Virus record (IMG/VR): IMGVR_UViG_3300042540_001399
Location: 62,001 to 126,000 of that record
Reading direction: 5' to 3' (one strand)
Length of the DNA stretch: 64,000 nt
Part shown: in pieces, positions 8,780 to 29,220 of the stretch
Numbering within the stretch: position 1 is the stretch's first letter
Layout of the letters: each line of letters starts with the position of its first letter
Program-made: the position numbers and the translations under genes
Notes under the pieces: model-generated
What the model saw: only the letters and a program-made list of their open reading frames with translations
What the model was told of the DNA's origin: nothing
Databases searched by the model: none

Positions 8780-8786
8780 ATAATAA

Positions 8787-8793: not shown

Positions 8794-8814
8794 AAAATAA
8801 CAAACTAAAATTAT

Positions 8815-9723
8815 ATGGCAACAGGTACATATGGAACTATAAGACCGGCGGATGTAAGTCCTACTGATGTAGACATAATATTGAATTATACACCATCACG
8901 AGATGTTACAAATGATTTCCAATTAACTAAACTTAATTCATCTGCGGTTTTAACACCATACTTTAACAATGCGAATACTGGTGGAAATGCTGGTATAGAA
9001 ATATTAGGTGGTTTATATAATTTAAGACTACCGGCAAATGTTTTCAATCAACTTGGAATTTACACTTTATATATTAGACCGGCCGAAATTAGAACTAAAA
9101 TAACTGATTGTGGTATTTTAGCCGCACTTCCAAACATAAAAGGTCTTGTTATAGACATAAGTAATGTACCTGTTGCTTTCAGGGACAAATTTGTCAATCA
9201 AGGATTAATTGGATATAGGGTCGAATATCTTCAATCTAATGGTGCTAAAATTCCTAATTTTTTTAGAATTATAACTTCATCATTTTATTGTGAACCTGTT
9301 GTACAAAATACAACAAATACATCAACAAGTACTGTAAGATATCAATATGTCAATGGTGTTACAAATTTAATTTTTTGTACCTTGTCACCATCATCGTCCC
9401 CATCAAATAAACCAAACGCAACACCATTTATTGGGCAACCCGATCAAGACATTATTATAAGTAATACTTTTTTCAATCCTATTACTATGGAAATTGAAAT
9501 GGTTGAACATGATATTTCTACTTTAGCAATTGCATTGTTTGGTAATCAGACTAAGTCTCTTAATGACGGTATCTACACACTTTACGATTCACAAAATAAC
9601 ATTTACAAACAGTACAATTTATTTGAAATTAGAGATCAATACAATGAGTTGTTATATGAAGTTAGACAAGATAGAAATAATAACATTGATTTTAGTAAAA
9701 ACTTTGCAAACATAACACAATAA
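8815..9723 (+). CDS. Putative baseplate/structural protein (302 aa)
   Basis: Own TATTTAT motif. Stop overlaps the start of the baseplate-wedge-like gene. Confidence 0.5.
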   Translation: MATGTYGTIRPADVSPTDVDIILNYTPSRDVTNDFQLTKLNSSAVLTPYFNNANTGGNAGIEILGGLYNLRLPANVFNQLGIYTLYIRPAEIRTKITDCGILAALPNIKGLVIDISNVPVAFRDKFVNQGLIGYRVEYLQSNGAKIPNFFRIITSSFYCEPVVQNTTNTSTSTVRYQYVNGVTNLIFCTLSPSSSPSNKPNATPFIGQPDQDIIISNTFFNPITMEIEMVEHDISTLAIALFGNQTKSLNDGIYTLYDSQNNIYKQYNLFEIRDQYNELLYEVRQDRNNNIDFSKNFANITQ

Positions 9724-12700
9724 TGGCGGTAATAAAATATAAATGGCCACCTCAAACCGACACAGGAGCGAGTACTTTTTCCGACGACTTGGTTGGTGTA
9801 CAACTTGTTGCCGGTGGAGGTTTAACTAACGCTAATTTTGAATTCACAACGGGATTAACGGAAAAACAAAATAGGAAATTTAACATAGGTGCCTTTTCTA
9901 GTCCAATTAGTTTAGATGATTTGGACCTAAAAAGTGTTGAAGAATCAAAAGTTTTAATTGCAAAAAATTTACAGGTATACCCTAATTTTGATTTAAGTCA
10001 AATAACTAATTTTACTTTGTTCGGCTCGTTGACCAAAAGGATATCAACTTCAATAAGTAGAATTATAAATTACTTTCCGGCGGGTATAGAAAGTTTGTCG
10101 CAAAATTTGAATTTCCAAACAGGACTTACCGCGGTAAATATGTATTACGATAAAGTTCTTGATGAAACTTATTTAGAATTACCATTAAACAGAATCAGAA
10201 ATCCTTTTGATATTGATTTTACTACTACAGCTACACGAAATTTTGAACTTAGCGAAATTGAAGTTTCACCCTTAAGAAATCTTACAGTGGAATATCTAAA
10301 CTATTCAATATTTGTTAATAGTTCAGAATATAATGTAATATTCTTAGATCCTGTTGATGATACTGATACTGTGTTAAAACTTTATGTCACTGGTAACCCA
10401 TTCAGTGGATTATCAGCTACGACCTCTGACATAGTGTTAAGACCTAATACTTTTTATACGGAAAAATCTTTCAATGACTTTTTTGATGAGGTTGAAAAGT
10501 TTCTTCTTAATAGATTGATTCTACCTATTTACACTGCGACTTTTCAAGTACCACAAGAAAATGATGATGGAACTTATTCTACAGTTAACCAAACAATAAG
10601 TTGGCCGTTGGACGGTTCATGGAACCTTGATATTAGAACAAATGATTTCGATAAGTATTTGACAACATTGAATACAATTTGTGAAAATTTAGATTCGTAC
10701 AACACAAATTTAATTTCAAGATTTTTGACCACAGGTGCATTAAAAGAATTTGATACAAGTGATAGAAAAATAGAAAAAGTCTTACAAATTTACGGTAGAA
10801 GTTTTGATGAAGTTAGAAAATTTGTTATGTCCTTGGCAAATATGACATCAGTAAATTATAATACTGGCAACGATATTCCATCACAACTTTTGAAAAACTT
10901 AGCAGAAACATTAGGATGGAAAACAAATATTTCTCCAATAAGTAATGAAGGTTTGTTGGATTCAATATTTGGTACTAATCAAGAAAGTAATTTTCCTGGA
11001 TATTCAAGAGCACTTACACCTGATGAAATTAATTATCAATTCTATAAGAATTTAATACTAAATGCGGCATATCTTTTTAAATCTAAAGGTACTAGAAGAT
11101 CCATTGAAATTCTTTTGAGACTTGTTGGTGCGCCAGAAGCCCTAATAGATTTTAACGAATACATATATATTGCTGATGAAAAAATAAACTTATCACAATT
11201 TGATAAACAATATTTAAACATTTCAAGTGGACTTTATGTTCAACAGACCCCTGTATTGGATCCAACGGATATCTTTTCTATCATGGGAGTTCAGTATACT
11301 GGGTTTACCTTACAAACGACTGTAAGTGGTGTATCTACAACTAGATTGGACTATCCTATGGACAATCAAGGGTACCCAACGGCACCACAAGAAAATGATG
11401 GATACTTCTTTCAAATTGGTGGTGGATGGTTTGAATCAACACCTGATCATCACATGCCAGAACAAGTAGTACCTACTAACCAAGTTTTTGTTGGGCAGAA
11501 TCCTAATTATCAGACAGTTTTATTACCGTTTAATTACGGGCAAATATATTTGGATAGATACCGTAAGTTTCCATTTATGAGTGTTGGTTACGGATTAAAC
11601 AAAACTATAGATAATAAAAAAAGTTGGACTATTGATAATGTTGGATTAAGAAAAAGTTCTGACGGAGGGTTCAATGCTTATTATAGGGTTTATGATGAAA
11701 GATATGTTGTAAACGTAAAAAACGTAGATGTATTTCTCAATCCAGCCCAAGGGTTAGCTTACGACGTTTGGTCTATGTCAAGAAGATACAATTACCCAAT
11801 ACCTAATGAAGGATTAGATTATGTAGAACCAACTTATTGTAATCCAAATCCAAATGGACCATATCCAAATAGGGGTGGTATAGATTGGACAGAAATAAAT
11901 CCTAAGCCAAAACAAAAAACATTTTTTGAGTTTGCCCAAACTTTTTGGAAGAACATGATTAATGTAAGGAATAGACAATTTATTACCGATGGTAAAACCG
12001 GTGGTTACCCAACTTTACAATCAATTTATTGGAAATATTTAGAGTCTAATCAAACAATCAATATACCTAATGATAATTTCACATATAGAACAATGATCGA
12101 CTATGTGAATGGTTTAGGGGATTATTGGATTAAACTTGTGGGACAAATGATACCAGCAACAACTTTATTAACATCTGGTGTGAGGTTAGAAAATTCCATA
12201 TTTCATAGACAAAAATTTGTTTGGAGAAGGCAAATGGGATGTCAAATTATACCAGTACCTTGCAAACCTTGTTCTTTAATTGGTCAACTGTTTGCGGTAG
12301 ATTGTCCAATACAATCGGCAACATGTCCTGTTTATCCTTGGGGATCTAACCCTTTAATTACATCTTTTGCGGTTGTACTGAATCAACTTCTACAAAATAA
12401 AGGATTAGTACAACCTAATTGTGACCCAAATACATTGGAAAGTACTTGGTATGTAGACTTAGTTTTAAACGGGGATTTACTATCACACTATGAATTTTTC
12501 ACGGGTTACGGAAATACAAGTCCTACAGCTAGTTATCCGTCAAACACGGTTTGGTTGTCGGCTTTACAGTCTGCTTTAAGTAATTTACAATCAGAAGGAT
12601 TAGATTATGTTATCAACAGTGATGACACTGTCACAATATATAATAGTAACTGTATACCCCTAAGTGTTACCCAAAATTTTGAAATAAATGTTGGGATAAA

Positions 12701-12725
12701 CTTTAATTTACTTTGTATTCAATGA
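9723..12725 (+). CDS. Baseplate wedge-like protein (P2 gpI / T4 gp7-type segment), 1000 aa
   Basis: IPSQLLKNLAETLGWK...AAYLFKSKGTRRSIEILLRLVG resembles the Tail_P2_I pattern (L..LA...G......KGT...I...L..LG). Confidence 0.65.
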   Translation: MAVIKYKWPPQTDTGASTFSDDLVGVQLVAGGGLTNANFEFTTGLTEKQNRKFNIGAFSSPISLDDLDLKSVEESKVLIAKNLQVYPNFDLSQITNFTLFGSLTKRISTSISRIINYFPAGIESLSQNLNFQTGLTAVNMYYDKVLDETYLELPLNRIRNPFDIDFTTTATRNFELSEIEVSPLRNLTVEYLNYSIFVNSSEYNVIFLDPVDDTDTVLKLYVTGNPFSGLSATTSDIVLRPNTFYTEKSFNDFFDEVEKFLLNRLILPIYTATFQVPQENDDGTYSTVNQTISWPLDGSWNLDIRTNDFDKYLTTLNTICENLDSYNTNLISRFLTTGALKEFDTSDRKIEKVLQIYGRSFDEVRKFVMSLANMTSVNYNTGNDIPSQLLKNLAETLGWKTNISPISNEGLLDSIFGTNQESNFPGYSRALTPDEINYQFYKNLILNAAYLFKSKGTRRSIEILLRLVGAPEALIDFNEYIYIADEKINLSQFDKQYLNISSGLYVQQTPVLDPTDIFSIMGVQYTGFTLQTTVSGVSTTRLDYPMDNQGYPTAPQENDGYFFQIGGGWFESTPDHHMPEQVVPTNQVFVGQNPNYQTVLLPFNYGQIYLDRYRKFPFMSVGYGLNKTIDNKKSWTIDNVGLRKSSDGGFNAYYRVYDERYVVNVKNVDVFLNPAQGLAYDVWSMSRRYNYPIPNEGLDYVEPTYCNPNPNGPYPNRGGIDWTEINPKPKQKTFFEFAQTFWKNMINVRNRQFITDGKTGGYPTLQSIYWKYLESNQTINIPNDNFTYRTMIDYVNGLGDYWIKLVGQMIPATTLLTSGVRLENSIFHRQKFVWRRQMGCQIIPVPCKPCSLIGQLFAVDCPIQSATCPVYPWGSNPLITSFAVVLNQLLQNKGLVQPNCDPNTLESTWYVDLVLNGDLLSHYEFFTGYGNTSPTASYPSNTVWLSALQSALSNLQSEGLDYVINSDDTVTIYNSNCIPLSVTQNFEINVGINFNLLCIQ

Positions 12726-15484
12726 GTTGTGGTTCAATAAATATATTCAATTATTCAATTACGGGAGACTGTGAAAACACAGGATCTGGAGGTGTATCCT
12801 TTTCAATAAATGGGGGATCTCCAAACTATACAGTAACTGAATATTCATCAACAGGATTATTACCTACATCGGCAGATACCACATCATATTTTTTTGTAGG
12901 TCTTACCGCAGGAACGTATGTTATTGAAATAGTTGACAGTTGTTTAGAAGAACCACTTATTTCACAATTTGTAGAATTCACTATTTCTTCGGGAAGTTGT
13001 ATTTCTATCCAAAGTCAGGGAACAACGTGTGGACTAAACAATGGTTCTATAACGGCATCGACAACTAATATATATGGAACAGGATATTATTATTTATATG
13101 AAATTAATGATGGATACATAACAAGTGGTACCAACTTTAGTAATATTTTTAATAACCTGACACCTGGTTTTTATTATGTTATTGGAGATGATGGTGGTGG
13201 ATGTACCGGTCGTAGTGAAACTTGTCTAATAAAAGAAACAAACTCGTTGGACTTTGGTTTATATATCGTAAATGATGCTAGTTGTGTGCCAATAGATGGA
13301 ACCGGAAAAATATTTGTAACAGGTACAACAGGAACTCCACCTTATACATACAATTGGACACCGAATGTTGGACCCCAAACAGGTCCAATTGTTACTGGTC
13401 TTACCGCAGGAACCTATTCTGTAACAGTAACCGATAATTTGGGATGCTCAAAAACACAAAGTGTTTTGTTGACAGATGTGCCAAATTTAGGTATTGCCGC
13501 TATGTTAACAACAAGTCAACCATCTTGTTTTTCAAATGACGGAGTGGTTGATGTTATTGTTTCTGGTGGAACAGCACCTTATTATTTTTCAGGATCAAAC
13601 GGAGAAGTTGTTATACAATATAGTAATACATATACCTTTACGGGACTATCAAATGGTGTCTTCACAATTTCAGTCACAGACGCGGGTCTTTGTAATGTAA
13701 CATCATCAGTTTCCTTGATTACACCAAATGGTTTCATTGTAACATCTATGGTTGTTACAAATTCGAATTGTAATCAAACCGATGGCTCAGTTCATATTGA
13801 ACTCAATAATGGTCTGGCTCCAGGTAACTATCAGTACACACTCTATGATTATAATAGTAATCAAACAGTTATAACCACAACTTCTATTTGTGATTTTACC
13901 GGATTAGAAAGTGGAAGCTATACAATAACAATACAAGATGTACCCAACAATTCAGGATGTATTTATACAGGTTATTTTTCTGTTGTAAATCAAAATAAGT
14001 TCGAAATAAGTGTAAGTAATACTGACACAACTTGTGGATTGAATAATGGTGTTGCAATTATTACCGCAACCACAGGAGGAACATTACCTCTAAACTATAC
14101 ATTGTCGGGTGGTACACCTGTTACGACTACAACACAATTAACGAACGTATTTAACAATCTAAGTCCTGGTTTTTATCAAATAACAGTAACAGATTCTGCG
14201 GTACCATCATGTTCACAAACTGAATTATTTTATGTTGCTCCGTCACAGAACGTTAATATAAATTTAATTGGTGTCCCACCAGTAATAGGTAATGATGGTG
14301 AAATATTCCTTAATATTACAAGTGGTAATCCTCCATTTACAATTACGTGGAGTCCAAATGTTGGATCACAAACAGGACTACATTTAACAGGTTTGTCAAA
14401 TGGTAGTTATAGTGTTTTGGTTACAGATAGTGACGGATGTATTTCATCGGACATAATATCATTACAAGGCACTGAATTAGTTACAACTTACGCGTCTTTT
14501 AATTTGTGTACCGATGATTTCATAGACACAAAAACATATGGAAAAAGAGGAGTTCTTCAAATGATGAACGAAGGATTTTTCGATCTTACAACAGGTGATA
14601 CTGGTTGTGAAATAGTAGAAGCCTACTTTACAACCCAAGTCGAAATTGATGGTGTTGTAAAAGAAGATTTATTTTTAACTTACACGGGAACACCTTTTCC
14701 ACAATACGCAGACATTTTATGGATAGAAAGTCTTAGAACCACACTTAAAGAATTTGACGAAGTAGGAGATGTGATTATTGATTTGGCAACAAATAAAATA
14801 ACTATAACAAACAAATGTAACACAAAAATAAAGGACTGTGATATTGTAACTTTTAACGACTTTAGTGATACTAATGTCAAAATAAATTTGTTGGTTGAAT
14901 ATCTAATAAATTGTCAAACTTGTGGTAAAGCGCCTGATTGTATAGGATTCTATGCTGATATGTCAATTGTAAGTGGTGATTGTAGTGGTTTCAGTGCAAA
15001 TATGAATTTAGTGGGACCAACACCAACACCGTCAGTAACACCAACACCAACAATTACTCCTACACCTACAATCACACCTACAGTAACTCCGACAATTACA
15101 CCAACACCTACTATACCAGCAACTGGTTGTACCTGTTTCATATTAGAATCAAACGCCGATCTGGCGATTTTTGAATATACTAAATGTGGGGAGTCTACAC
15201 CAAGTACAATTCCTATTTTGTTTGGTACGGGATACACTTGTTCATCAACTACCCCTATTTTAATTAGTGGTATGGGATCGGTATTGGGTTCATCGGGTTC
15301 ATGTATAGTTTATGAATGGGAAATCACCTTTAGCGGTGGTGGATCATACACTACATATAATTGTGGTTCATCAAATGAAACTTCCGTTTTAAGTGGAGGT
15401 ACTTTCACGGTTTGTTCGACTATAACACCAACAAGTTCATCACCAAATTTTGTGTCAGCAGTAAATATTGGAATATGTCCTTAA
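12713..15484 (+). CDS. Fibre/adhesin-like protein with multiple SprB-like repeats and a Pro-Thr linker (923 aa; start may be 12722)
   Basis: Repeated C...(N/D)G.I.....GGT.PY.Y.W......GL.AG.Y.V.VTD..GC units (e.g. GTTGTPPYTYNWT...GLTAGTYSVTVTDNLGC). PT tract near the C-terminus. Confidence 0.7.
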   Translation: MYSMSCGSINIFNYSITGDCENTGSGGVSFSINGGSPNYTVTEYSSTGLLPTSADTTSYFFVGLTAGTYVIEIVDSCLEEPLISQFVEFTISSGSCISIQSQGTTCGLNNGSITASTTNIYGTGYYYLYEINDGYITSGTNFSNIFNNLTPGFYYVIGDDGGGCTGRSETCLIKETNSLDFGLYIVNDASCVPIDGTGKIFVTGTTGTPPYTYNWTPNVGPQTGPIVTGLTAGTYSVTVTDNLGCSKTQSVLLTDVPNLGIAAMLTTSQPSCFSNDGVVDVIVSGGTAPYYFSGSNGEVVIQYSNTYTFTGLSNGVFTISVTDAGLCNVTSSVSLITPNGFIVTSMVVTNSNCNQTDGSVHIELNNGLAPGNYQYTLYDYNSNQTVITTTSICDFTGLESGSYTITIQDVPNNSGCIYTGYFSVVNQNKFEISVSNTDTTCGLNNGVAIITATTGGTLPLNYTLSGGTPVTTTTQLTNVFNNLSPGFYQITVTDSAVPSCSQTELFYVAPSQNVNINLIGVPPVIGNDGEIFLNITSGNPPFTITWSPNVGSQTGLHLTGLSNGSYSVLVTDSDGCISSDIISLQGTELVTTYASFNLCTDDFIDTKTYGKRGVLQMMNEGFFDLTTGDTGCEIVEAYFTTQVEIDGVVKEDLFLTYTGTPFPQYADILWIESLRTTLKEFDEVGDVIIDLATNKITITNKCNTKIKDCDIVTFNDFSDTNVKINLLVEYLINCQTCGKAPDCIGFYADMSIVSGDCSGFSANMNLVGPTPTPSVTPTPTITPTPTITPTVTPTITPTPTIPATGCTCFILESNADLAIFEYTKCGESTPSTIPILFGTGYTCSSTTPILISGMGSVLGSSGSCIVYEWEITFSGGGSYTTYNCGSSNETSVLSGGTFTVCSTITPTSSSPNFVSAVNIGICP
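15017..15118 (+). repeat. Pro-Thr low-complexity coding repeat
   Basis: PTPTPSVTPTPTITPTPTITPTVTPTITPTPTIP, encoded by ccaaca-type repeats. Confidence 0.9.
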
Positions 15485-15513: not shown

Positions 15514-17694
15514 ATGGCACTTCAAGTAACAATTACAAATATAAATTCAGTAACATACCCTGTTGATGTATATGTTTGTACAGATTGTCCAGATACAAGT
15601 TGTACTTTAGTTGACACAATTTTTTCTGTACCATCAACAATAAACATACCCGCACCCTATAGCGGTTCATCTTCTTTTTCTGTTAGAATTGTAGATAGTG
15701 CCAATTGTGAATATTGTCAAACTTTTGGAAATACAACAACAACTACAACAACCATAAATCCATTGTGTTTAAGTTGTGATATTGGTTTTGATTTTTACGA
15801 TACTAACCCAATATCCGAAATTTCAGTTGGAGAAGTTACAGGAAGTTGTGATACAAATATTACTGATTACGTTATAAATTGGTATGGACCGGGTATTGGA
15901 AGTAGTACAGTTGCGTTTACTTCGGGTATAGGTAATTCATATAGTGGTGACTATACATATACACATCCGCTTACAGGATCATCGTCAGTTCCTGTTGTTG
16001 CAGGAGTCTACACACCAATAATACAAAAAATCAAATTGAATGGTATTGAGTACACGGACTTAAATTGTTTCCAATCAACTACAGTTGATGTTGATGCATT
16101 AACATGTATTAATGGACCTGGAACTAATTTGCCACAATATTCCCATTTGTTAAGTTTTAGTGCTGTTACAAATTTGAATCCACCACCGGTAAATGTGACT
16201 TACGCATTGGATCCTTTGAAACCATATTTTGCAATTAGATTCGATACTGAATTAGTTTATGACAGTTTGAAAATTACATTGAATGCTGCGGCATATACAG
16301 ACCCAATTATTTTAGAATATTTTACCGCGGGTCAGTCTTTAGGTGGATCAGATCTTAATTTAAATACAACACCAAAAAAATTCCAACATTCCTTTAGTCT
16401 ACCATTTGTGGCGAAAGTACTTACACTAACAGGGTTTACAATAAATACTGGTGATTATATTGATATAGAAGTTACCCCCAACCCAACAAACAATAACACA
16501 AATTGGAAACTTTATTGTGAATGTTTAGAAAATTTTGATTGTTCTTTGTGTGACGACACAAATAACACAACACCATTTAAAATAATTGAATCTTCTATAA
16601 CCCAAGGTGCTGCCAGCCCATGTGACATTATAAGTATGACTTTCCAAGTAAGTGCTTGTACATCAAGTGATTTTTTAAGATATATGTTAAATACTGGTGG
16701 TACTTTTTCTAATATTAATTATATTGATAATTTTTACCAAGGTATAGTGACCCAATATTTCACAAATATGAGCTCCACACCTCAGATTCAGTGTGTAAAT
16801 GGTGGGTACTACTTAACGCCACAATGTGATACACCAAGCAATTCTACAATTACTTATAGCAAAAATGTACCAGGAGCCGAAGGACAGATAACCATGACCT
16901 TCACTGATTTTACAGATTTTCAAGTATATAATAATGGATGGAATAACTTACTTTTTAGTTATTCGGGGAATCCTACAGATTGTACCGATATTGAATACTA
17001 CAGATATTTTTGGTTAACAATCCCACTAGCAAGTGGAAATGATAATTGTGGTGACACTACAGGTTACGAAACTTATTTTATTCACCCATCATCAACATTC
17101 ACAACTGGTGGAACAGGTCCATGGACAATAACAATTGATATGGCTACCATAACTGACTGTATTACATTTACTAGTTGTGATCTAAATTGTAATACTGAAG
17201 TTTTGACAACTTTAAGTAATGTAAATAATTCATCAACAGGAACAACTAATAATATTTCAATAACTTCAAACACAGGATCAAGATTAGTAACTCCGTGGCA
17301 TTCCGTAACACTTATAGATTCAGGGTCAACCACTTTTTCATCAAGTACAGTTACAAACCAAATGTGGATACCAAAATATATTAATGAAACAGTACCTTAC
17401 TCTGGAAATCCTCTCACCATAATTCCTAATCTTTCAGGGAAGACATGCGATTTCAATAATTGGACATATAATTCTGCAAATCCATCAATTAACAACGGTT
17501 TTTATGTGCAATTCGGGTTTTGGTACGAAGTTAGAAGGACAAACCCATTGAATGTTGCGGATTTCGAAATATGGACAACAAATTTAACAAATGGAACATA
17601 TACTGGTTATCCTGGTCAACCTACCGCATTATTTAAAATATATGAATTTGTAGGTGGGGTTCCTAATGTGATTGATCCAAACTTTTTTGTTTAA
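15514..17694 (+). CDS. Cys/Thr-rich fibre-like structural protein (726 aa)
   Basis: N-terminal ~70 aa domain shared with ORFs at 17696 and 28234, followed by a poly-Thr linker. Structural context. Confidence 0.55.
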   Translation: MALQVTITNINSVTYPVDVYVCTDCPDTSCTLVDTIFSVPSTINIPAPYSGSSSFSVRIVDSANCEYCQTFGNTTTTTTTINPLCLSCDIGFDFYDTNPISEISVGEVTGSCDTNITDYVINWYGPGIGSSTVAFTSGIGNSYSGDYTYTHPLTGSSSVPVVAGVYTPIIQKIKLNGIEYTDLNCFQSTTVDVDALTCINGPGTNLPQYSHLLSFSAVTNLNPPPVNVTYALDPLKPYFAIRFDTELVYDSLKITLNAAAYTDPIILEYFTAGQSLGGSDLNLNTTPKKFQHSFSLPFVAKVLTLTGFTINTGDYIDIEVTPNPTNNNTNWKLYCECLENFDCSLCDDTNNTTPFKIIESSITQGAASPCDIISMTFQVSACTSSDFLRYMLNTGGTFSNINYIDNFYQGIVTQYFTNMSSTPQIQCVNGGYYLTPQCDTPSNSTITYSKNVPGAEGQITMTFTDFTDFQVYNNGWNNLLFSYSGNPTDCTDIEYYRYFWLTIPLASGNDNCGDTTGYETYFIHPSSTFTTGGTGPWTITIDMATITDCITFTSCDLNCNTEVLTTLSNVNNSSTGTTNNISITSNTGSRLVTPWHSVTLIDSGSTTFSSSTVTNQMWIPKYINETVPYSGNPLTIIPNLSGKTCDFNNWTYNSANPSINNGFYVQFGFWYEVRRTNPLNVADFEIWTTNLTNGTYTGYPGQPTALFKIYEFVGGVPNVIDPNFFV

Positions 17695-18027: not shown

Positions 18028-19494
18028 ATGTCATTTTTAACAGATAGAAATTTTGCTTCAGGTGTTTCGGTTAATGATTTAATTCACATTGTTATAACAG
18101 GTGATACATCACAAAATCCTGCCGGATCATCATATAAAACTACTTTGGGTGATGTAATTTCTTTAGTGACAGGAATTACAGGAAATTATTTACCAATAAG
18201 TGGTGGTACAGTTACGGGCACAACTTTCTTTATCAGTGGTTTATCGGCCAACACTTTTTCGGCATCAACTATTGGTTCATCAGGTAGTTGTGTAGACGAT
18301 TTGTATGTTTCGAATATACATTCATGTTCGCCTTTGAATATAAATCCATTTGACGAAGGTGAAGTTCTGTTTGGGTCCAATAAACAAATTTTTGTTGACT
18401 TAGTTGGTAAAAAAGTTGGATTCAATATGACCCCAACATATAATATTGATGCGATGGGAACTACTAATGGTAGATTTTTCTTTAGAGGTGCGTCCCTTCC
18501 AAGTATAAACATTTCTGGTACAAGTAACTCCTACGTATCCACAAACACTGTGGCAGGAAATGTTGGGTTATTGTCTGTTGCTTTTGGGGAATCATACCCA
18601 TCTAACCTTTATGGTGTTGTATCGGGAAATACTTTACTAACAAACACAAATGAATCAAATGATATGGTTATTTTAACCAATCAAAGTTCAACTAATGATA
18701 AAAATATAAAGTTTTTTGCTGGAAAATCTGCGGATACAAAACCTGATATTATTATTTTGGGTTCAGGATCAGGATTAAAAAGAGGGTATGTTGGTGTTGG
18801 ATTAAATAATCCCCAGGAACACTTACATGTTGATGGAAATTCTATAATCAACCAAGGATTAACCGCGGCAACATTTAATATTTCAACAGCACCTAATATA
18901 GATACAAATGTACCTACAGAATATCTAACAAGAGATGCTTCGACCGGTGAAGTTAAAATCAAACAAATTCCAGGACCAACCGTTTTCGGTTTATTTGCAC
19001 AAACAGGAAACAGTGTGGTTATCAGCGGTACCACAGTTGAATCTACTTTAATTGATGGAGGTGTTGGAACTTTATCTGTTCCGGCAAATGGTTTTTCTAT
19101 TGGGGATAGTTTTAGAGCGGACTTTGGTGGTTTAATGAGTGTAAAACCTGGTGGTGATACTTTAAGAATTAGAATAAAAACTGGTAGTGTTATTTTAGGT
19201 GATACTGGAGTTTTAAGTATACCGGCAGTAACAAACGATGTTTGGCTTTTAAATATAAATTTTACGGTAAGAAAACTTGGGGGACCAACGTTTGCTTCAA
19301 TTGTAAGTTTAGGAAATCTACATGTAATAAAAGCCGCAAGTACAACACCAACAAGTTTTGCCTTTAACACTGTTAACTCATCAACTTTTGATACAACAAT
19401 ATCAAATACACTTGACGTTACCGCCGAATGGGGAAGCAATAGTACTAATAACAAAATATATTCTGATATTTTTGTTCTAAATAAAATATATTAA
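18028..19494 (+). CDS. Tail fibre protein (488 aa)
   Basis: YLPISGGTVTG and GYVGVGLNNPQEHLHVDGN are typical fibre shaft motifs (YLPLSGGTLTG; GNVGIGT..P...LHV.G). Confidence 0.65.
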   Translation: MSFLTDRNFASGVSVNDLIHIVITGDTSQNPAGSSYKTTLGDVISLVTGITGNYLPISGGTVTGTTFFISGLSANTFSASTIGSSGSCVDDLYVSNIHSCSPLNINPFDEGEVLFGSNKQIFVDLVGKKVGFNMTPTYNIDAMGTTNGRFFFRGASLPSINISGTSNSYVSTNTVAGNVGLLSVAFGESYPSNLYGVVSGNTLLTNTNESNDMVILTNQSSTNDKNIKFFAGKSADTKPDIIILGSGSGLKRGYVGVGLNNPQEHLHVDGNSIINQGLTAATFNISTAPNIDTNVPTEYLTRDASTGEVKIKQIPGPTVFGLFAQTGNSVVISGTTVESTLIDGGVGTLSVPANGFSIGDSFRADFGGLMSVKPGGDTLRIRIKTGSVILGDTGVLSIPAVTNDVWLLNINFTVRKLGGPTFASIVSLGNLHVIKAASTTPTSFAFNTVNSSTFDTTISNTLDVTAEWGSNSTNNKIYSDIFVLNKIY

Positions 19495-19529: not shown

Positions 19530-20507
19530 ATGAAAGATATTGTATTTGTTACGGCACAACCAGACGTTCCTTATTTCCATTGGCAAGTTAAATTATATAC
19601 CCACAATTTTATAAAAAAAGGCATCAATCCAAATAACATACATGTAATATTTGCAATGGTTCATGGTGCAAAAAAACCAACTGATGAAGCTTTAAAAATA
19701 AAAGATTATGGTGTTAATGTTCATTTTTATGAAGATAATAGAGATATTAAAACATATATACCAAGCATAAAACCTTATATGATCACACAGTGGTTAAAAG
19801 AGTTTCCCGAACATGGTAAATTGTTTTTTTTACATGATGCGGATATAATATTTAACTACCTACCAAATTTCGAAGAACTTTTAAAAGACGAACTTACTTA
19901 TGTATCTGACACAATTGGGTATATAGGTTATAACTATATTATGGATTGTTGTAATAGATATGAAACAAAACATCCAAATTCACAAAAAGGACAGTTACTA
20001 CAAGAAATGGTTAATATTGTAGGTGTAACAGTAGATTGTGTAAAATGTAATCAAGAAAATTCTGGTGGTGGTCAATATCTAATTAAAAACACTGATCATA
20101 ATTTATGGCAAAAAATATATGACGATTGTTCTCCATTATATTATCAGATGTTAGATTATCAAAAAAGATTTCCCATAAGTCCAGGTGAAATTCAATTTTG
20201 GACGGCAGAAATGTGGTCATTACTTTGGAATCTATGGTTAAACGGTAACGAAACCAAAATAACTAAAGAGCTTAATTTTTCATGGGCAACTGACACCATA
20301 GGAGTTTTCGAAAAAAATCCAATACTACATATGGCAGGTGTAACCGAAAATCTAAAAGGTACTAAGTTTTACAAAGGAGAATACATTAATATTGACCCAA
20401 TCCAAAAATTAAAATCTAACCCAAACCATTTTGATTACATAGATAAAAACAGCTCAACAATCAAGTATGTTGAAGTAATGAAATCTTTCATTCAAAATGA
20501 CTTATAA
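19530..20507 (+). CDS. GT-A glycosyltransferase resembling plant peptidyl-Ser galactosyltransferase / Hyp arabinosyltransferase (GT96/GT95-like)
   Basis: Ordered motifs YFHWQ, YIPSIKP...QWL, FFLHDADIIF (DxD), GGGQY, WTAEMW mirror recalled SGT1 motifs YFDWQ, YPAINKP...YWL, ILDADMII, VGG, WISEMY. No signal peptide. Confidence 0.7.
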   Translation: MKDIVFVTAQPDVPYFHWQVKLYTHNFIKKGINPNNIHVIFAMVHGAKKPTDEALKIKDYGVNVHFYEDNRDIKTYIPSIKPYMITQWLKEFPEHGKLFFLHDADIIFNYLPNFEELLKDELTYVSDTIGYIGYNYIMDCCNRYETKHPNSQKGQLLQEMVNIVGVTVDCVKCNQENSGGGQYLIKNTDHNLWQKIYDDCSPLYYQMLDYQKRFPISPGEIQFWTAEMWSLLWNLWLNGNETKITKELNFSWATDTIGVFEKNPILHMAGVTENLKGTKFYKGEYINIDPIQKLKSNPNHFDYIDKNSSTIKYVEVMKSFIQNDL

Positions 20508-20531: not shown

Positions 20532-21584
20532 GTGGGACAAACAGATAGACCTAAACCAGTACTTGCACCCAGGAATGAATGTGATGTTATTACAATTTTT
20601 CCTATGGGGGCAAAATGTTTTACAAAAGAACCAACTAATGTAACAACATTTGATGGTGCGGTTTCGGTTGGTATTACAGGGGGAACACCACCATATACTA
20701 TAGCTTGGGAAAATGGTAATGTTGCGCCGGCAATAACAAATTTAGGTGTCGGTGAATATAACGTAACAATTACAGATTCCTACGGTGATTTTGTTATAAA
20801 CCAAAAATGTGTTCTCAACGCCACACCACTTCCAACTCCAACTCCAACTCCAACACCGACCATAACTCCAACACCGACCATAACTCCAACACCTTCTGTA
20901 ACACCAACATCAACTCCTATACCAACATTGACACCATCGGCAACACCAGAACCTTTAATTTGTTTTACCACTGAATATGAATTTTTAGGTCCGATTTATA
21001 CATCAATGTCATCAACAGGACAATATAATGGAAGACCATACTACGAACTAATAGGTCTTGGTGGAAGTGCTTTTGTTTGGTGGAATTCCGGATTGTCAAG
21101 ATGGGAAATGACATTATTCTTAGGTGGTGGTCTACTTTTGGCATATTTACCAAGTACTAATTCTTTTCCTGTTGACCAAACAGTTGATTGGGTAAATGTA
21201 AGAACTGTTTATATGTTAACATCATATGGGCTTTGTAGTTATCCACCAACAGAAATGTGTTTTGAAGTTTTAAAGAATGACCCACCAACAACACTGATAT
21301 GTAATGGATATATTGTTGGTACTTATAATAATAAGTTTTATTTTGCAATATACAGTCCTGTAACGTCACCACCAACATTAATTGGGTATGTATTTTGGGA
21401 TGATGTTGACAACAGATGGGAATGTTGGCAAACTTTTAACCCATCTACAGGCCCCACAGGAAGTTTTTATGCTTATTTATCAAATAACGCTAATTACCCA
21501 AATAGTACAATTTCTCAAAACTGGGTTTCAAACCCACTTGTGACATATGGAATAAACAGTTCTTCACTAGGGACTTGTCAGTAA
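20532..21584 (+). CDS. Fibre-like protein: SprB-like repeat, Pro-Thr linker, two tandem aromatic modules (GTG start)
   Basis: GITGGTPPYTIAW...NLGVGEYNVTITDSYG. PT tract at 20823-20954. Duplicated YN(G/N)+..Y...W....RWE module. Confidence 0.65.
   Translation: MGQTDRPKPVLAPRNECDVITIFPMGAKCFTKEPTNVTTFDGAVSVGITGGTPPYTIAWENGNVAPAITNLGVGEYNVTITDSYGDFVINQKCVLNATPLPTPTPTPTPTITPTPTITPTPSVTPTSTPIPTLTPSATPEPLICFTTEYEFLGPIYTSMSSTGQYNGRPYYELIGLGGSAFVWWNSGLSRWEMTLFLGGGLLLAYLPSTNSFPVDQTVDWVNVRTVYMLTSYGLCSYPPTEMCFEVLKNDPPTTLICNGYIVGTYNNKFYFAIYSPVTSPPTLIGYVFWDDVDNRWECWQTFNPSTGPTGSFYAYLSNNANYPNSTISQNWVSNPLVTYGINSSSLGTCQ
20823..20954 (+). repeat. Pro-Thr low-complexity coding repeat
   Basis: [44 protein letters not shown]. 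Confidence 0.9.
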
Positions 21585-22621: not shown

Positions 22622-25210
22622 ATGGCATATATAATTAAAAATACATCGGGATTGGTTAACACAAGAGTTACCGATACAGGTAGACAAAAGTTATCACAAG
22701 GTAACTTCAAAGTTGCCTATTTCCAAATTGGGGATAGTGAAATATCATACGATAAATTACCTTCTAATTATAACTTTACAAATTCCTTTGTTTTAGAACC
22801 AGCATTTAATACTCAAAATTCTGCAGGTGTTCCAGAGTCAAATAGACAAAGCATTAAATATCCATACTATGTTGATGGAACTAGTGGATCTACTTATGGA
22901 ATACCTTACATGGATTCTACGATAGATCCTGTTTATAATAGGGCACCACTAAGAGGGTTTTTTACAGGAAACACAACCGCAAGTACAGTCGTTTGGAGTG
23001 CATTAACTAACAATCAATACGTGGTTTCTTCAAACTATATTATTGATATGTCAACTCTAAATGGTACTAATAAAGTTGATTTAATTTATTCTGGATGTAA
23101 TTATACAAATACAAACAAACCATCTATTGGGGATTTAATTACAATATATTATGATGGTTTTGGTGAGTATGACTGTAATTGTGTTAATTTACCAACACCG
23201 ACTCCTACACCTACACCGTCAATCACACCAACCGAAACTATCACACCAACTCCAACACCAAGTATCACACCTAATTATAACCCTTGTGCATCGCCAACCC
23301 CAACACCAACTCCAACAAGGACACCGTGTTTAACACCTACTCCGAGTAGACTTTGTCCTCCACCACCGCCACCAAGTTGTGTTATGTCTATGAATTCATG
23401 TTATCAAATTCTGACATATAGAATAATTGATATATGTGAAAATACTATAACACTTGATAGAAACACACCCGATTTTTGTGGTACAGTAATAACACATTGT
23501 TACGCACGTACATTGATCTATCCGCCAAATATGACTTCTATTTATGATAGTATAACTCCAAGTCCACATTGGGGCGAACAAGTAATCGATTTTGAATCTA
23601 TTTGTGATACAGATCAATTTGATGTGAAAATATGGAACATGAATATTCCATGGACCGAAAATCCCGCTGGTATGATACCTACAAAATATGAAGGATATCA
23701 ATATTTTGGTTCAGTTGATTATATAGGATCAAAAGAATACTTTGGATACAATTCAAATTCAGGACAAACATTTTTTATCAATAATACTTTGAGTGCTGAG
23801 ACTACAGATACTTTTTATTACAATTCTTTAGGTGAAATCGTCAAAGTACAACCCGAAGAACAAAAGGCAATTGCCATCATACATTATACTAATCAAACAA
23901 TTGATTTCTTTTATGGTGAAAAATTTGCACTGGAACCGTATGATCCAAGCAACTTAGACGATACAACAGGACAGGCTAGAAATTTTAGACTTCATATACC
24001 TTGGTTGATGTGGCATAAGAATCCTGAATGTTGTTTTGGTCAAACTTTTTGGGTTGATCCTCCAGGATTTGAAGGTAAAAATCTTTTTGATGTTAGATAT
24101 GTTCAGACAACTAGAAATGATGATATGAATAATCCCGGTATTAGATATTATCATTTGTGGGATACTAATAAAAACAAAAACGGTTTACCTAATCGAATTG
24201 GTAAAGTTTTCCCTGATAGTAAATTAATTATTATTGACGATGAAGAAATAATTGCCGCGATGTCTTATAAGGCAAATAGAAATTGGACTTTGCCGGCACC
24301 TCAATTATCGCTTATAACCCCAAATACTTGTGGATTAGCGTCTTTAACTGCTGATGGGGTTTTGACAGGTCATGGTGAAACTATGTATGTCACTTATAGG
24401 TTTACAAATAAAACTTGTAGTACAAATTCACTTCATTGCAATTACTATGTAAAACTTGTTGGGAATAATAATGATTGTACGCCTAATGTTTCACAAAATG
24501 TTGCCATTAGATTTGGTCGCGAATTTAATTGTTTGGATTATATGATACCAACAACAACGACGACAACGATACCAATATTTACTACTACAACTACAATTCC
24601 ATTCACAACTACAACAACAACAGATCCTTTTCCATTAACAACGACTACAACTTTTTGGCCGTACACCACAAGTACAACAACAATATGCCCACCTTCTTGT
24701 AATATAAATAAAGGTTTCTTTGCTGAATCATTCCAAGTTTTATGTCAGAAAGTGAAAACAGGACAAAGACCGGATCCATCAAGTTGGAAAATAATTGATT
24801 ACACACAAGACTTAGGTAATTTAGTAACACAAGATACTTTGACAAACAATACTTTTGTTATAACGAAAGATCTTTACGATAAGGCTCCATATTACGACTT
24901 GGGTAGTTATATAAACTTGACTAAATTAGGAAATGACAAACCTGATTTAAATTTTGGTGACGAATATTATTTTTACGGTTCCTTTGAATCAGATATAATG
25001 GCAACCATATATCAGATGAAATATAAGATAAATTTAAATTTTACAGAATTTCAAAATTCAACTAACCCAACATGGAAACAAGGAACAAAATCATTCGTAA
25101 CCGAAATTGCATTATTGGATGAGGATAAAGACATTCTTGTAATGTCAAAGTTACAATCACCTGTGTTAAGACAAGGAATACAACAGTATTTAGTCAAACT
25201 TGACTTTTAA
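22622..25210 (+). CDS. Tail/baseplate-fibre junction-like protein with PT, poly-Pro and poly-Thr linkers (862 aa)
   Basis: N-terminal [25 protein letters not shown] and C-terminal [18 protein letters not shown] resemble the two ends of tail-collar fibre (DUF3751-like) domains. Confidence 0.55.
23192..23374 (+). repeat. Pro-Thr and poly-Pro coding repeat
   Basis: [27 protein letters not shown]...[11 protein letters not shown]...CPPPPPPSC. Confidence 0.9.
24548..24690 (+). repeat. Poly-Thr mucin-like coding repeat
   Basis: [48 protein letters not shown]. Confidence 0.9.
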
Positions 25211-25258: not shown

Positions 25259-25858
25259 ATGGCTAAAATCAAAAATTCACCAAAAGTCTTAGGATTAGAT
25301 ATATCTACTAAAACAATTGGTTGGGCTTTGTTCGATATACAAAGTCAACAACTTTTAGAACTAACACACGTTTCCCCAAGACCAAAAATGAAAGAAGATG
25401 AAAAATTAAAAGAGTTACTTTTAAAATGTGAAATCTTTAGAGAAAAATTGATACAATACAAAAATTTAGGAATTGTCAGTGTGGTAATTGAAGAACCACT
25501 TCTTAATTCGAATAATATCTATACAATCCAAACCCTGTTAAGATTTAATAGTTTTATTTTCAAAGAAATATATGAAATATTAAATGTTGTACCTGAATTT
25601 ATATCAACATATAATTCCCGTAAATTTGCTTTTCCTGAATTAGTCCAAGAAAATGAAAAGAAAAAATTTGTTTTGTTTGGAGGTCTACCAAAAGATATTG
25701 ATAAGAAAATGATTATATGGGAAAAAGTTGCTAAAAGAGAACCACAAATAAAATGGTTATACACAAGAAATAATACACTTAAAAAAGAAAATTTTGACCA
25801 AACAGATGCATATACCTGTGTTTTAGGATATATGAGATCTAAAGAAATTTGGAAATGA
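25259..25858 (+). CDS. RuvC-like Holliday junction resolvase
   Basis: VLGLDISTKTIGWA, VVIEEP, DQTDAY give the RNase H-fold D, E, D/D catalytic set. Confidence 0.8.
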   Translation: MAKIKNSPKVLGLDISTKTIGWALFDIQSQQLLELTHVSPRPKMKEDEKLKELLLKCEIFREKLIQYKNLGIVSVVIEEPLLNSNNIYTIQTLLRFNSFIFKEIYEILNVVPEFISTYNSRKFAFPELVQENEKKKFVLFGGLPKDIDKKMIIWEKVAKREPQIKWLYTRNNTLKKENFDQTDAYTCVLGYMRSKEIWK

Positions 25859-26400: not shown

Positions 26401-28017
26401 TTAGTGAATTGAATCTGAACAAAGATCTATAATAGTTCCACCGGCCATAGAAGCCCCATTACCCGAAATTGTTATTGTGGTATATGGTACATCGTTTGAA
26501 AAGGTGAATATTCCCGATCCAATATCACCGTATGGTGCATTTTGTGGACAAGGTATTGCGGAAATTACGTTCCCATTAATTTTTGCACAACAACTACTAC
26601 AAGTACTTATCACTGGATTACCTGTATTTGTTGTGATTATAAATTCTTCGTAAACAGTTGATGAAATGTAATTGTAATTTATGAATCTAAGCGTTACATT
26701 ATTAACAGGACTATCAAAAGTTAGAGTGTAAGTAAATGGGTTGTTTCCTGGTAAAATATCATTACCCAAATATAAAAAGTTGTCTTCTACATTTGGACCC
26801 GAAATACACCAACCTAAAAATCCACCAAAAGTTCCCGCTTCTATTTTTCCAGTACCACTACCTGTAATATTAACACCGTTAACAACTATTGAATTACCAA
26901 CTTGAGGTAATGTTACAACTTGTGAACATTCAAAACAACCAGGTGGTGTTGTAGGTGTGGGAGTTGGTGTTGCTGTAGGCGTTGGTGTAGGTGTTTGGGA
27001 AGGACTTGGGATACAATCTAAACATTTACCTTCATTTTCAGGACCTAATTCTGAAATTAATTCTATTTGATCTACACCACTTATGTTATCAACCAAACCT
27101 ATGAAGGTTGCACAAATTGATTCGTTGTTTATTATAGTTTTATAAACATATCCTTCTAAAGGAATTTCACCATTTATTAACAATAATTCGGTTGAGTAAT
27201 ATTCTATACCTGTGAAACAATCTCTGAATTTCTTACTACTTGAACATCTAATGTAATCATCAATCACATTAAATGTTACTTGACCAGAAACCAAACAATT
27301 TATTGTAGGTGTTGGTGTTGGACTTGGAGTTTCACTTGGAGTTGGAGTTGGTGTTGGTGTGAATGTTATTCCTGTTGCTTGAAAACTCAAACTATTACAA
27401 ACATTTGATGGTGTCGGTGTAGGTGTCGGTGTAGGTGTCGGTGTTTTTGTCGGGGTGACAGTAGGTGTTGGTGTAATGTCACAATTAAAATATGCTTCAA
27501 AATCTATTAGCTCACAACTTGGAAAAGTTGTTGATGTAGTTATGACACAGTATCCTTCAGAAAAAAATGAATCACATAAATCAGGACAATCACTTGTACA
27601 TGGACTTTTACCAAATAGTAAACACGGCTCATCAAGGTCGTTAGCCAAACACCAACAATTCTCATCAGAACTATAGTATATTACAAAATCACCAGTCCCA
27701 CCTGTGTAATAAGGAAGTCCATTATATGTTCCATTCGAAGTGTAGTTACCATCGTACAACGATGTCCCTGAAATACAATACTGATTTGAACACGGACAAT
27801 CATCAATGGAATCAATCCCCGATATTTGTTTATATTCTAAAACTATTGACCCATTTGAATAGTACCCGTTTGTTGCTTCTGAAGTACAGATTGAATCGAA
27901 ATATAAAATTGTACCAAGATTCAAATCATTCCCATACAATGGTATAATCAAAGGTTCTGAACATAATTCAGGGTCAATAGTTGAGTTTGAAAAATATCCT
28001 AAAAAAATACAAGCCAT
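26401..28017 (-). CDS. Cys-rich fibre-like protein with three Pro-Thr linkers (538 aa)
   Basis: Three PT tracts separate Cys-rich modules. Contains the GTYNGLPYY...W module shared with 20532. Confidence 0.65.
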
Positions 28018-28317: not shown

Positions 28318-29220
28318 ATGGAAGAACAAGAAGCTTTAGTTGAGTTATTAGAAGAAGTTTTAGGTAGTCACGGACTTCACTATCCCAATAGGGGTCAAAT
28401 ATCTTTTAATTGCCCTGTTTGTGACGAAGAAAGAAACAAACATAATTTGGAAGTGAACTACTTCAACGGAGTTTACAAATGTTGGGCTTGTGGTGATAGT
28501 GAAAACACACACGGTTCTTTAGGAAAATTATTTGACAAATACGGAACTAGAAAACAAAAAAAATTGTACAAAATTCTAAGACCCGAAGAAGAACAAAAAG
28601 TGGTAAGAAAAAAAAAACCAAAAGTTGTTTTACCTGAAAATTTTATATTATTTAAAGAATCAAACCCAATCTATCCTGTAAGAAGACAGGCATATAATTA
28701 CTTAAAAAGTAGGGGAATAACTGAAGATATCATAGAAAAGTTTGGAATCGGATTTTGCGATAAAGGTAGTCACCAAGGAAGAATAATTATTCCATCATAT
28801 GATAACAAGGGTAATTTGAATTATTATGTTGGTAGAAGTTGGGACCCACACAGTAGGGCGAAATATCGAAATCCTGAGGCAGAAAAAGAAAAAATTATTT
28901 TTTGGGAAAATTTAATAGATTGGAATAAAGATATTTACTTAGTGGAAGGTGCTTTTGATGGGATGTTTTTGGATAACCCAGTTGTAATGTTAGGTAAACA
29001 CATGTCTGAATTATTGTTCGAAACAATTTATAACAAGGCTAAGGCTAATGTAATTATTTGTTTAGACGGTGATGCATGGGAAAACGCTGTGAACCTTTAT
29101 CACGAATTAAATGGTGGTGAACTTTGGGGTAAAATTAAAATTGTCAAACTTCCAAAAGACAGGGACGTTTGTGATCTGAAGGGTGAAATAAATGAATATT
29201 ATTATGAAATTAAAGATTGA
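28318..29220 (+). CDS. DNA primase (Zn finger + TOPRIM)
   Basis: CPVC...CWAC zinc-binding domain, GRIIIP...YYVGRS, TOPRIM LVEGAFDG...CLDGD. Confidence 0.9.
   Translation: MEEQEALVELLEEVLGSHGLHYPNRGQISFNCPVCDEERNKHNLEVNYFNGVYKCWACGDSENTHGSLGKLFDKYGTRKQKKLYKILRPEEEQKVVRKKKPKVVLPENFILFKESNPIYPVRRQAYNYLKSRGITEDIIEKFGIGFCDKGSHQGRIIIPSYDNKGNLNYYVGRSWDPHSRAKYRNPEAEKEKIIFWENLIDWNKDIYLVEGAFDGMFLDNPVVMLGKHMSELLFETIYNKAKANVIICLDGDAWENAVNLYHELNGGELWGKIKIVKLPKDRDVCDLKGEINEYYYEIKD

Follow-up and report, generated by a model that had tools for sequence, protein, structure and literature searches.

A jumbo-phage gene belongs to an unnamed family of predicted GT-A glycosyltransferases that occurs alongside threonine-rich tags on phage virion proteins

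We propose that a gene in a jumbo phage of Flavobacteriia type encodes a glycosyltransferase of a large, so far unnamed phage family, which probably glycosylates the phage's own virion proteins on Thr-rich tracts. The gene lies at 19530-20507 (+) of the analysed stretch of DNA (64 kb of IMG/VR record IMGVR_UViG_3300042540_001399, hereafter the window). The support for this function is comparative. In 13 of 13 homologue-bearing loci from about ten phage lineages the gene lies in the structural module beside virion proteins with runs of five or more Thr, most of them C-terminal tails of major capsid or major tail proteins, whereas 18 related loci without the gene have no such runs in 224 kb. In the lineage of the window, 77 of 80 loci keep PT or poly-Thr proteins within 10 kb of the gene.

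The open reading frame starts at ATG and encodes 325 aa. A sequence-only reading had described it as a cytoplasmic protein with a DxD motif and five ordered motifs between two fibre genes, and this observation was confirmed, except that the fibre identity of the neighbours has only indirect support. The motifs are present in the order YFHWQ (residue 15), YIPSIKP (76) with QWL (87), HDADIIF (102), GGGQY (179) and WTAEMW (224). They are not chance, as they coincide with the conserved blocks of a 58-sequence family alignment, in which D105, G180, Q222, W229 and H267 are invariant and D103, W18, Q19, Q182, W224 and M228 are at least 90% conserved. The codons of the DxD motif (D103-A-D105) lie at 19836-19844 (+). 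The protein has no hydrophobic segment (highest Kyte-Doolittle mean over 19 residues: 0.92) and is predicted to fold as one globular domain, so that a cytoplasmic localization is reasonable.

A search of the PHROG profiles revealed a match over the full length to phrog_4417, a family annotated as of unknown function (E=1.8e-68; residues 6-319 against profile positions 3-290 of 293). The family comprises more than 800 clusters at 50% identity and is called "hypothetical" in every source checked. Searches of Pfam (E<=10), NCBIfam and PDB (phmmer and profile searches) gave no usable match, and none of the 120 closest homologues carries any precomputed Pfam domain. Longer family members in bacterial MAGs are, however, fused to other glycosyltransferase domains (PF11397 "GlcNAc", PF10250 O-FucT, GT6, GT2) and to a carbohydrate-binding F5/8 type C domain. 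Our literature searches found no description of this family or of glycosylation of poly-Thr tags.

An AlphaFold2 model of the protein (pLDDT 97.5, pTM 0.93) showed a GT-A glycosyltransferase fold with a single Rossmann-like alpha/beta/alpha nucleotide-sugar-binding domain, in which the DxD motif directly follows a hydrophobic strand (residues 98-101). Foldseek detected 193 PDB matches at E<=1e-3, and the top 50 listed are all GT-A glycosyltransferases. The nearest solved structures are retaining enzymes of the GT8, GT24 and GT6 type, namely WbbM, the UGGT catalytic domain, glycogenin, XXYLT1, LgtC and GT6 enzymes including blood-group GTA (E 7e-7 to 2e-5), several of which act on proteins or glycoproteins. 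Structural searches of a viral library returned the same family first, followed by giant-virus GT8 enzymes. The matches are moderate (TM 0.40-0.47 at about 10% identity), so that mechanism and specificity cannot be read from them and a retaining mechanism is only suggested. A DxD after a hydrophobic strand is shared with these enzymes, and the invariant C-terminal H267 may, by analogy, correspond to their conserved His and be the third metal ligand, as in GT8 enzymes. At the sequence level no link to GT8-like enzymes was found: Pfam Glyco_transf_8 was detected neither with the window protein nor with any of the 58 family members, and PDB searches gave nothing significant. The only sequence-profile hit in the PDB was the catalytic domain of GNPTAB, around the DxD (E=0.11), and one family member touched Stealth_CR2 (E=0.17), which could point to transfer of a sugar-1-phosphate on to Thr rather than a sugar. 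Both hits are at chance level and GNPTAB is not among the top 50 structural matches, all ordinary glycosyltransferases; we therefore consider phosphoglycosylation very unlikely.

The sequence-only reading had further interpreted the protein as a plant-type peptidyl O-glycosyltransferase (SGT1/HPAT, GT96/GT95) that glycosylates the phage's own fibre proteins. This interpretation is supported in part: a soluble DxD glycosyltransferase acting on Thr-rich low-complexity tracts of virion proteins is well supported by the comparative evidence, while the plant label is not supported by the tests made. In favour of such a kinship are the motif parallels drawn in that reading with Arabidopsis SGT1 and HPATs, the GT8-like nearest folds (HPATs were originally described as GT8-like), and the notion that both groups would be DxD enzymes acting on low-complexity peptides. 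The Pfam HPAT model (PF23452), however, gave no hit with the window protein at E<=10, and only one of 58 family members matched it, at E=0.38, which is what chance predicts. A length-restricted search with a 1369-aa fusion member, designed to exclude the short phage proteins and to expose long eukaryotic relatives, returned only bacterial MAG proteins. HPATs are Golgi type II membrane proteins (PMC8012813), whereas this protein has no membrane segment. No prolyl hydroxylase was seen among the ORFs scanned, and the tract that co-varies with the enzyme is poly-Thr, often without any Pro, rather than Ser-Hyp extensin-type motifs. A true membership in, or close homology to, GT95/GT96, with modification of Ser or hydroxyproline in Pro-rich tracts, is thus unlikely, although a distant superfamily link cannot be excluded. 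In concept the proposed enzyme would work like the plant enzymes, which start O-glycans on repetitive, Pro-rich or hydroxy-amino-acid-rich peptide tracts.

To analyse the genomic context of the family, we compared homologue-bearing loci of different phages. The gene follows the major tail protein in phiFL1A, phiCTP1, SA2 and TPWB06, the major capsid protein in Enterococcus 4995_1 and R3.3, and a small poly-Thr protein in iLp84 and Iacchus; in the cultured Chryseobacterium phage MA9V-3 it lies in the baseplate/fibre block. It is found among structural genes in nine lineages, and in the Herelleviridae phage Iacchus beside two poly-Thr proteins. Every one of these phages has T5-T12 runs in the adjacent virion proteins. 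In the whole phiFL1A genome such runs occur in exactly two proteins, gp45 (capsid by position) and the major tail protein gp50. This 38.8 kb phage has no other glycosyltransferase candidate, and the enzyme there would have to act alone on the protein.

The coupling of gene and tag was examined in 32 loci with homologous major tail proteins. All 14 loci with the gene have a poly-Thr tail on this protein, whereas in all 18 loci without it the protein ends right after the conserved core. The loci without the gene have 0 runs of five or more Thr in 224 kb and those with it 63 runs in 193 kb, although five of the loci without the gene have short flanks, so that the gene could lie outside them. On a tree of the major tail proteins, gene and tail change together five times, at least three times on well-supported branches; with so few independent events, a sign test on three to five pairs cannot reach 0.05.

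These data also bear on other roles of phage glycosyltransferases. Many phage and prophage GT-A enzymes modify host envelope polymers such as teichoic acid, LPS/O-antigen or capsule (known roles summarised in PMC12619734), possibly for superinfection exclusion or release, and WbbM, the top structural hit, is an O-antigen enzyme; in this view the poly-Thr tails would be unrelated linkers. Yet the gene lies inside late structural operons and not in lysogeny or moron regions, is present in strictly lytic large phages and encodes no membrane segment, and an envelope or other non-virion target does not explain its perfect presence/absence coupling with poly-Thr tails among close relatives. We consider this role unlikely. 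Glycosylation of hypermodified DNA bases to evade restriction is an established role of phage glycosyltransferases (PMC12619734; bioRxiv 10.1101/2023.12.21.572611), and the window also carries two DNA adenine methyltransferases. However, the annotated phiFL1A genome has the homologue but no DNA-hypermodification genes, including none of the 5-hydroxymethyl-pyrimidine pathway genes that DNA glycosylation needs, and the gene lies among structural rather than replication genes and is coupled to poly-Thr tags. A role in DNA modification is therefore very unlikely.

Within the window, Pro/Thr and poly-Thr tracts occur only in five ORFs between 12.7 and 28.0 kb, which flank the gene and are candidate acceptors. 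The best candidate is an 862-aa protein (22622-25210, +) with a PT tract (about residues 191-236) and four T5-T6 runs (residues 644-677). Orthologues were found in 73 of the 85 related loci searched, and in an alignment of 38 of them the tract residues P191, P193, P195, T654, T655, T657 and T686 are invariant; its AlphaFold2 model is poor (pLDDT 47), with both tracts at low confidence. The 350-aa protein directly downstream of the glycosyltransferase gene (20532-21584, +) has one SprB-type repeat (E=1.3e-5) followed by a PT linker of about 40 residues, and a weak PHROG hit to Hoc-like head decoration. The 923-aa SprB-repeat protein (12713-15484, +; SprB match at E=2.2e-15, Hoc-like PHROG hit at E=3.6e-9) has a PT tract of about 32 residues near the C-terminal domain. 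The 726-aa protein at 15514-17694 (+) has a T7 run near residue 75 and no family match, and the 538-aa protein on the opposite strand at 26401-28017 (-) has three PT tracts, on which alone its phrog_15511 hit rests. In the related loci the PT/poly-Thr ORFs lie mostly 1-7 kb downstream of the gene. All 80 loci of this lineage that were analysed carry the gene, so that the PT tracts have no negative control, and PT linkers are common in Bacteroidota and phage proteins anyway.

Directly upstream of the gene lies a 488-aa protein (18028-19494, +) without a Thr-rich tract and without a PDB or Pfam match. Its length and presence vary among relatives, with only 24 partial matches of very different length among the 85 related loci, as is often the case for receptor-binding fibres; its assignment as a fibre is inferred. 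Further upstream, five co-directional genes (5117-12725, +; 582, 260, 381, 302 and 1000 aa) are kept in the same order upstream of the gene in the related loci L007-L011 and in other loci, and form the presumed baseplate/tail block, without family or PDB match. Searches of the neighbouring proteins against Pfam, PHROGs and PDB, and with tblastn against phages, revealed no tail-fibre or baseplate match, so that the tract-bearing proteins are putative virion components only. The baseplate/fibre context is inferred from MA9V-3, in which the homologue sits between a Baseplate_J protein, three poly-Thr proteins and a protein with a T4 Gp10 C-terminal domain, the Baseplate_J protein occupying the position equivalent to the upstream block.

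Taken together, we favour with fair confidence, on comparative evidence alone, a model in which the gene encodes a cytoplasmic, metal-dependent (DxD) GT-A glycosyltransferase of a phage-specific family. During late infection it would transfer a sugar from a nucleotide-sugar on to threonine hydroxyls in Thr-rich, disordered tracts of the phage's own structural proteins, before or during assembly. The window also carries a dTDP-glucose 4,6-dehydratase-like gene at 59848-60774, which might supply the donor sugar. In small Firmicutes phages these tracts would be the C-terminal poly-Thr tails of the major capsid protein, the major tail protein or a small decoration protein, and in the phage studied here internal poly-Thr and (P-T)n linkers in SprB/Ig-repeat and other proteins of the baseplate/fibre block. 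The expected product is a mucin-like glycan brush on the virion surface. Our analysis establishes the predicted fold, the conserved DxD, the position of the family in structural modules, and its strict co-occurrence and co-variation with poly-Thr tags. We infer from these, without biochemical or proteomic evidence, that the virion proteins are glycosylated, that the tags are the acceptors, that the enzyme starts the glycan, that the chemistry is likely retaining (alpha-linkage), as suggested by the nearest folds, that PT tracts are used as well as poly-Thr, and that the coat may serve shielding, stiffness, protease resistance or adhesion.

Virion glycosylation by phage-encoded enzymes has been demonstrated only in mycobacteriophages (Che8 gp108-110, Corndog, Myrna; Freeman et al. 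2023, as cited in PMC12619734 and PMC12363180), in which the phage's own capsid and tail-tube subunits are modified at their C-termini in the cytoplasm. The poly-Thr tags of phiFL1A sit on exactly those two proteins. The enzymes are unrelated, however, as hhalign of the family profile against Che8 gp108, gp109 and gp110 gave probabilities of 0.8%, 0.2% and 0.05%, and no Mycobacterium phage is among the 77 tblastn hits. The Che8 genes lie at the far right end of the genome and not in the structural operon, the Che8 capsid and tail proteins have no poly-Thr tail, and the hosts in the present family are Bacillota and Bacteroidota (plus one Arcanobacterium phage) rather than Mycobacterium. Chlorovirus PBCV-1 also carries its own cytoplasmic glycosylation machinery for structural proteins, independent of host pathways (PMC9614988), but this eukaryotic giant virus has atypical N-linked glycans, several enzymes and no poly-Thr tag. 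Dense O-glycosylation of long Ser/Thr-rich disordered repeats occurs in mucins and in the serine-rich repeat adhesins of Gram-positive bacteria, in the latter in the cytoplasm before export and with GT8-type enzymes among the extending transferases, giving a stiff, protease-resistant glycan brush. Those systems use GT27 or GT4 (GtfA/B) initiating enzymes and act on cell-surface proteins, whereas here a single unrelated GT-A enzyme is carried by the virus and the tags are on virion subunits.

A broader reading, which we regard as about as likely as not, is that a single portable module, consisting of a short poly-Thr (or PT) tag and one cognate soluble GT-A enzyme, has spread among phages of at least Bacillota and Bacteroidota (plus one Arcanobacterium phage) and converts capsid, tail-tube, decoration and fibre proteins into mucin-like glycoproteins in the bacterial cytoplasm. 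The enzyme would then be the initiating polypeptide Thr-O-glycosyltransferase and the founder of a new CAZy family, and a tag of about 7 residues plus one soluble enzyme would be an attractive minimal system for making O-glycoproteins in bacterial cytoplasm. In mycobacteriophages virion glycosylation alters antibody recognition (PMC12363180). If this unrelated family does the same job, phage glycoproteins are widespread rather than a mycobacteriophage peculiarity. The family is present in well-studied Enterococcus (VPE25, phiFL1), Lacticaseibacillus, Staphylococcus, Lactococcus and Clostridium phages and in abundant environmental jumbo phages. This would bear on the annotation of thousands of "hypothetical" genes, on how therapeutic phages are seen by the immune system, and on how phages stick to mucus, polysaccharide or host surfaces.

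Analysis of the region proposed by the sequence-only reading confirmed an open reading frame at 19530-20507 (+) that encodes a protein of 325 aa, and the observation held. The gene lies within a long run of co-directional, closely spaced ORFs that extends from 124 to 25858. The five ordered motifs that had been noticed in the protein are at residues 15, 76/87, 102, 179 and 224. They are not chance resemblances within a random protein, since in an alignment of 58 homologous sequences (29-82% identical to the protein of the window) they coincide with the conserved blocks. D105, G180, Q222, W229 and H267 are invariant in this alignment, and D103, W18, Q19, Q182, W224 and M228 are at least 90% conserved. 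The protein has no hydrophobic segment. The window itself matches IMG/VR contigs of 274 and 291 kb, encodes SprB repeats and carries at 46850-47773 (+) a complete DnaJ chaperone with J domain, CXXCXGXG zinc finger and C-terminal domain. This fits the jumbo 'moraphage' type, which is predicted to infect Flavobacteriia and for which DnaJ/DnaK genes are a reported hallmark (PMC12619734).

Searches of curated libraries with the protein sequence revealed no match in Pfam at E<=10 and none in NCBIfam, and nothing significant was detected among PDB sequences, either with the single sequence or with the family profile. The protein does match phrog_4417, a family of 'unknown function', over its full length at E=1.8e-68. 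This family is large, with 1355 hits in the 90%-clustered database, 832 clusters at 50% identity and at least 595 places in IMG/VR. Every public name that we retrieved for its members is 'hypothetical protein', 'phage protein' or 'prophage pi2 protein 34'; the last is the name of the family member in the well-studied Enterococcus phage VPE25, which offers a ready laboratory model for testing virion glycosylation.

To analyse the fold of the protein, we used the alignment for an AlphaFold prediction, which gave a very confident model (pLDDT 97.5, pTM 0.93). A Foldseek search placed this model in the GT-A glycosyltransferases. The nearest solved structures are WbbM, the UGGT catalytic domain, glycogenin, XXYLT1, LgtC and blood-group GTA, which are retaining enzymes of the GT8/GT24/GT6 type; however, these matches are distant (TM 0.40-0.47, about 10% identity). 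In the viral structure library the best matches are family members, including Orf49 of Lactobacillus phage LP65, followed by giant-virus GT8 enzymes. The DxD motif follows a hydrophobic strand in the model, as in GT-A enzymes. Longer family members in bacterial MAGs (among them proteins P0159, P0187, P0145, P0202, P0195 and P0157 of our set) are fused to other glycosyltransferase domains (the PF11397 'GlcNAc' transferase, the O-fucosyltransferase PF10250, GT6, GT2), to a carbohydrate-binding F5/8 type C domain, or to radical SAM/SPASM or methyltransferase domains. The fusions to glycosyltransferase and carbohydrate-binding domains are independent support for a role in glycan synthesis. Two of these proteins are labelled Bacteroidota and Actinomycetota MAG proteins, and the family is therefore not confined to phages. 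The sequence-only reading had assigned the protein to the plant-type GT95/GT96 enzymes. This attribution is not supported, as the HPAT model of Pfam does not match and the protein is soluble, although a distant relationship is not excluded by this profile search.

A tblastn search revealed full-length homologues in 77 cultured-phage records (32-38% identity in the 40 records listed, under 60% in all), with Enterococcus, Lactobacillus, Staphylococcus, Lactococcus, Clostridium, Arcanobacterium and Chryseobacterium as hosts. In every lineage that we inspected, the gene is next to virion or candidate virion genes. It lies directly after the major tail protein in phiFL1A, phiCTP1, SA2 and TPWB06, and directly after the major capsid protein in Enterococcus 4995_1 and R3.3. 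In iLp84 it follows a small protein next to the capsid gene, in nattely it is found in the head module, and in Iacchus (Herelleviridae) it follows two small poly-Thr proteins. In MA9V-3 it is located between a Baseplate_J protein, three poly-Thr proteins and a protein with a T4 Gp10 C-terminal domain.

In all of these phages the adjacent virion proteins carry runs of 5 to 12 threonines, and this coupling to poly-threonine tags is the key finding of our analysis. Most of the runs form a C-terminal tail on the major tail protein, the major capsid protein or both, whereas in iLp84 and Iacchus the small upstream proteins are largely poly-Thr repeats. In Staphylococcus phage SA2 (5661-5924 of our locus L005) and Arcanobacterium phage TPWB06 (7714-7920 of locus L124) a short annotated ORF overlaps the 3' end of the major tail protein gene in another frame and encodes almost pure poly-Thr. 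It looks like a programmed-frameshift extension that would give some tail-tube subunits a much longer Thr tag. Across the whole 38.8 kb genome of phiFL1A, runs of T>=5 occur in exactly two proteins, gp45 (the capsid protein by position) and gp50 (the major tail protein). These are the same two virion components that carry glycans in mycobacteriophages (PMC12619734, PMC12363180).

As a control, we retrieved 27 further loci with homologues of the phiFL1A tail protein and added five from GenBank records. All 14 loci that contain the glycosyltransferase gene have a tail-protein terminus with a T run of 6 or more, whereas in all 18 loci without it the tail protein ends within a few residues of the conserved core, with a longest T run of 2. 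Six-frame ORFs of the 18 loci without the gene contain no T>=5 run in 224 kb, while thirteen loci with the gene, from about ten lineages, contain 63 runs in 193 kb. Treated naively, 13/13 against 0/18 gives a Fisher probability near 5e-9, but the loci are not independent, and five of the loci without the gene have short flanks. Streptococcus phages with 57-60% identical tail proteins are absent from the 77 glycosyltransferase hits. On a tree of the tail-protein cores, with the tails excluded, gene and tail change together five times, at least three of them on well-supported branches, and never separately; these are too few pairs for a formal sign test (p=0.25 for three). Comparison of loci L096-L103 with L002/L097/L099 from this set revealed that tail proteins which are 99-100% identical over the first 190 residues carry different poly-Thr tails, with two T runs split by 'RP' in one set and three T runs split by Ser in the other. 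The tags seem to evolve much faster than the protein core.

In the lineage of the window the gene order is conserved and consists of an upstream five-gene block, SprB/PT proteins, the glycosyltransferase, more PT proteins and then a RuvC-like gene. In the window, the RuvC-like resolvase (25259-25858 (+)) and a DnaG-type primase (28318-29220 (+)) follow the PT-protein block, and the same switch from baseplate/fibre genes to replication genes occurs in MA9V-3, where a DnaB-like helicase follows. Of 80 related loci, 77 have PT or poly-Thr ORFs within 10 kb, mostly 1-7 kb downstream, with 475 PT-type and 106 poly-Thr tracts. The 862-aa protein encoded at 22622-25210 has orthologues in 73 of the 85 related loci searched, and in an alignment of 38 of these sequences both its PT tract and its poly-Thr tract have invariant Pro and Thr positions. 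Within the window, such tracts occur only between 12.7 and 28.0 kb. All 80 retrieved loci of the lineage have the gene, which leaves no negative control here, and PT tracts as acceptors are an extension from the poly-Thr result. The tract-bearing proteins of the window are not proven to be virion components, as all homology searches were negative and the model of the 862-aa protein was too poor to use.

We propose that a soluble, probably Mn-dependent GT-A enzyme, made late in infection, uses a nucleotide-sugar to O-glycosylate threonines in disordered Thr-rich tags of structural proteins in the cytoplasm. While the conservation of the family, its position beside virion or candidate virion genes and its co-occurrence with poly-Thr tags were observed directly in the sequences and the loci compared, the transfer of a sugar to these tags, and each further step of this mechanism, is inferred. 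In phiFL1A the gene encodes the only glycosyltransferase candidate in the genome; there the enzyme would have to be the initiating polypeptide transferase and use a host sugar donor. As the nearest folds are retaining enzymes, an alpha linkage is the better guess, again by inference. In the window, a 308-aa SDR enzyme is encoded at 59848-60774 (+), about 39 kb from the glycosyltransferase. It is closest to dTDP-glucose 4,6-dehydratase (TIGR01181, E=6.6e-91, 304.7 bits, below the 365-bit equivalog cut-off), and this phage-borne nucleotide-sugar enzyme might tailor the donor sugar; no other rhamnose-pathway gene was seen nearby. Shielding, stiffness, protease resistance and adhesion would be candidate functions of such a coat, which lie outside the reach of our data. 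Glycosylation of DNA and modification of the host envelope are both unlikely as alternative roles. Against both, the gene lies among structural genes and is coupled to poly-Thr tags; against the former, phiFL1A has the gene but none of the 5-hydroxymethyl-pyrimidine pathway genes that DNA glycosylation needs, and against the latter, the gene is present in strictly lytic large phages and the protein has no membrane segment. The window also encodes two DNA adenine methyltransferases, one Dam-like and one CcrM-like (48705-49544 (+) and 61208-62056 (+)), which are probably anti-restriction functions.

The closest system in function is the virion glycosylation of mycobacteriophages, but the enzymes are unrelated, with hhalign probabilities below 1% for the comparison with the Che8 glycosyltransferases. 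The Che8 genes lie outside the structural operon, and the Che8 capsid and tail proteins have no poly-Thr tail. The interpretation of the sequence-only reading is partly supported: the idea of virion glycosylation is well supported by comparative genomics and is sharpened here to a module of a poly-Thr tag plus its cognate enzyme, whereas the plant-type family label is not. Glycosylation of virions as such is already described; what we consider new is an undescribed enzyme family and acceptor tag proposed for phage virion glycosylation, with wide distribution and easy experimental access.
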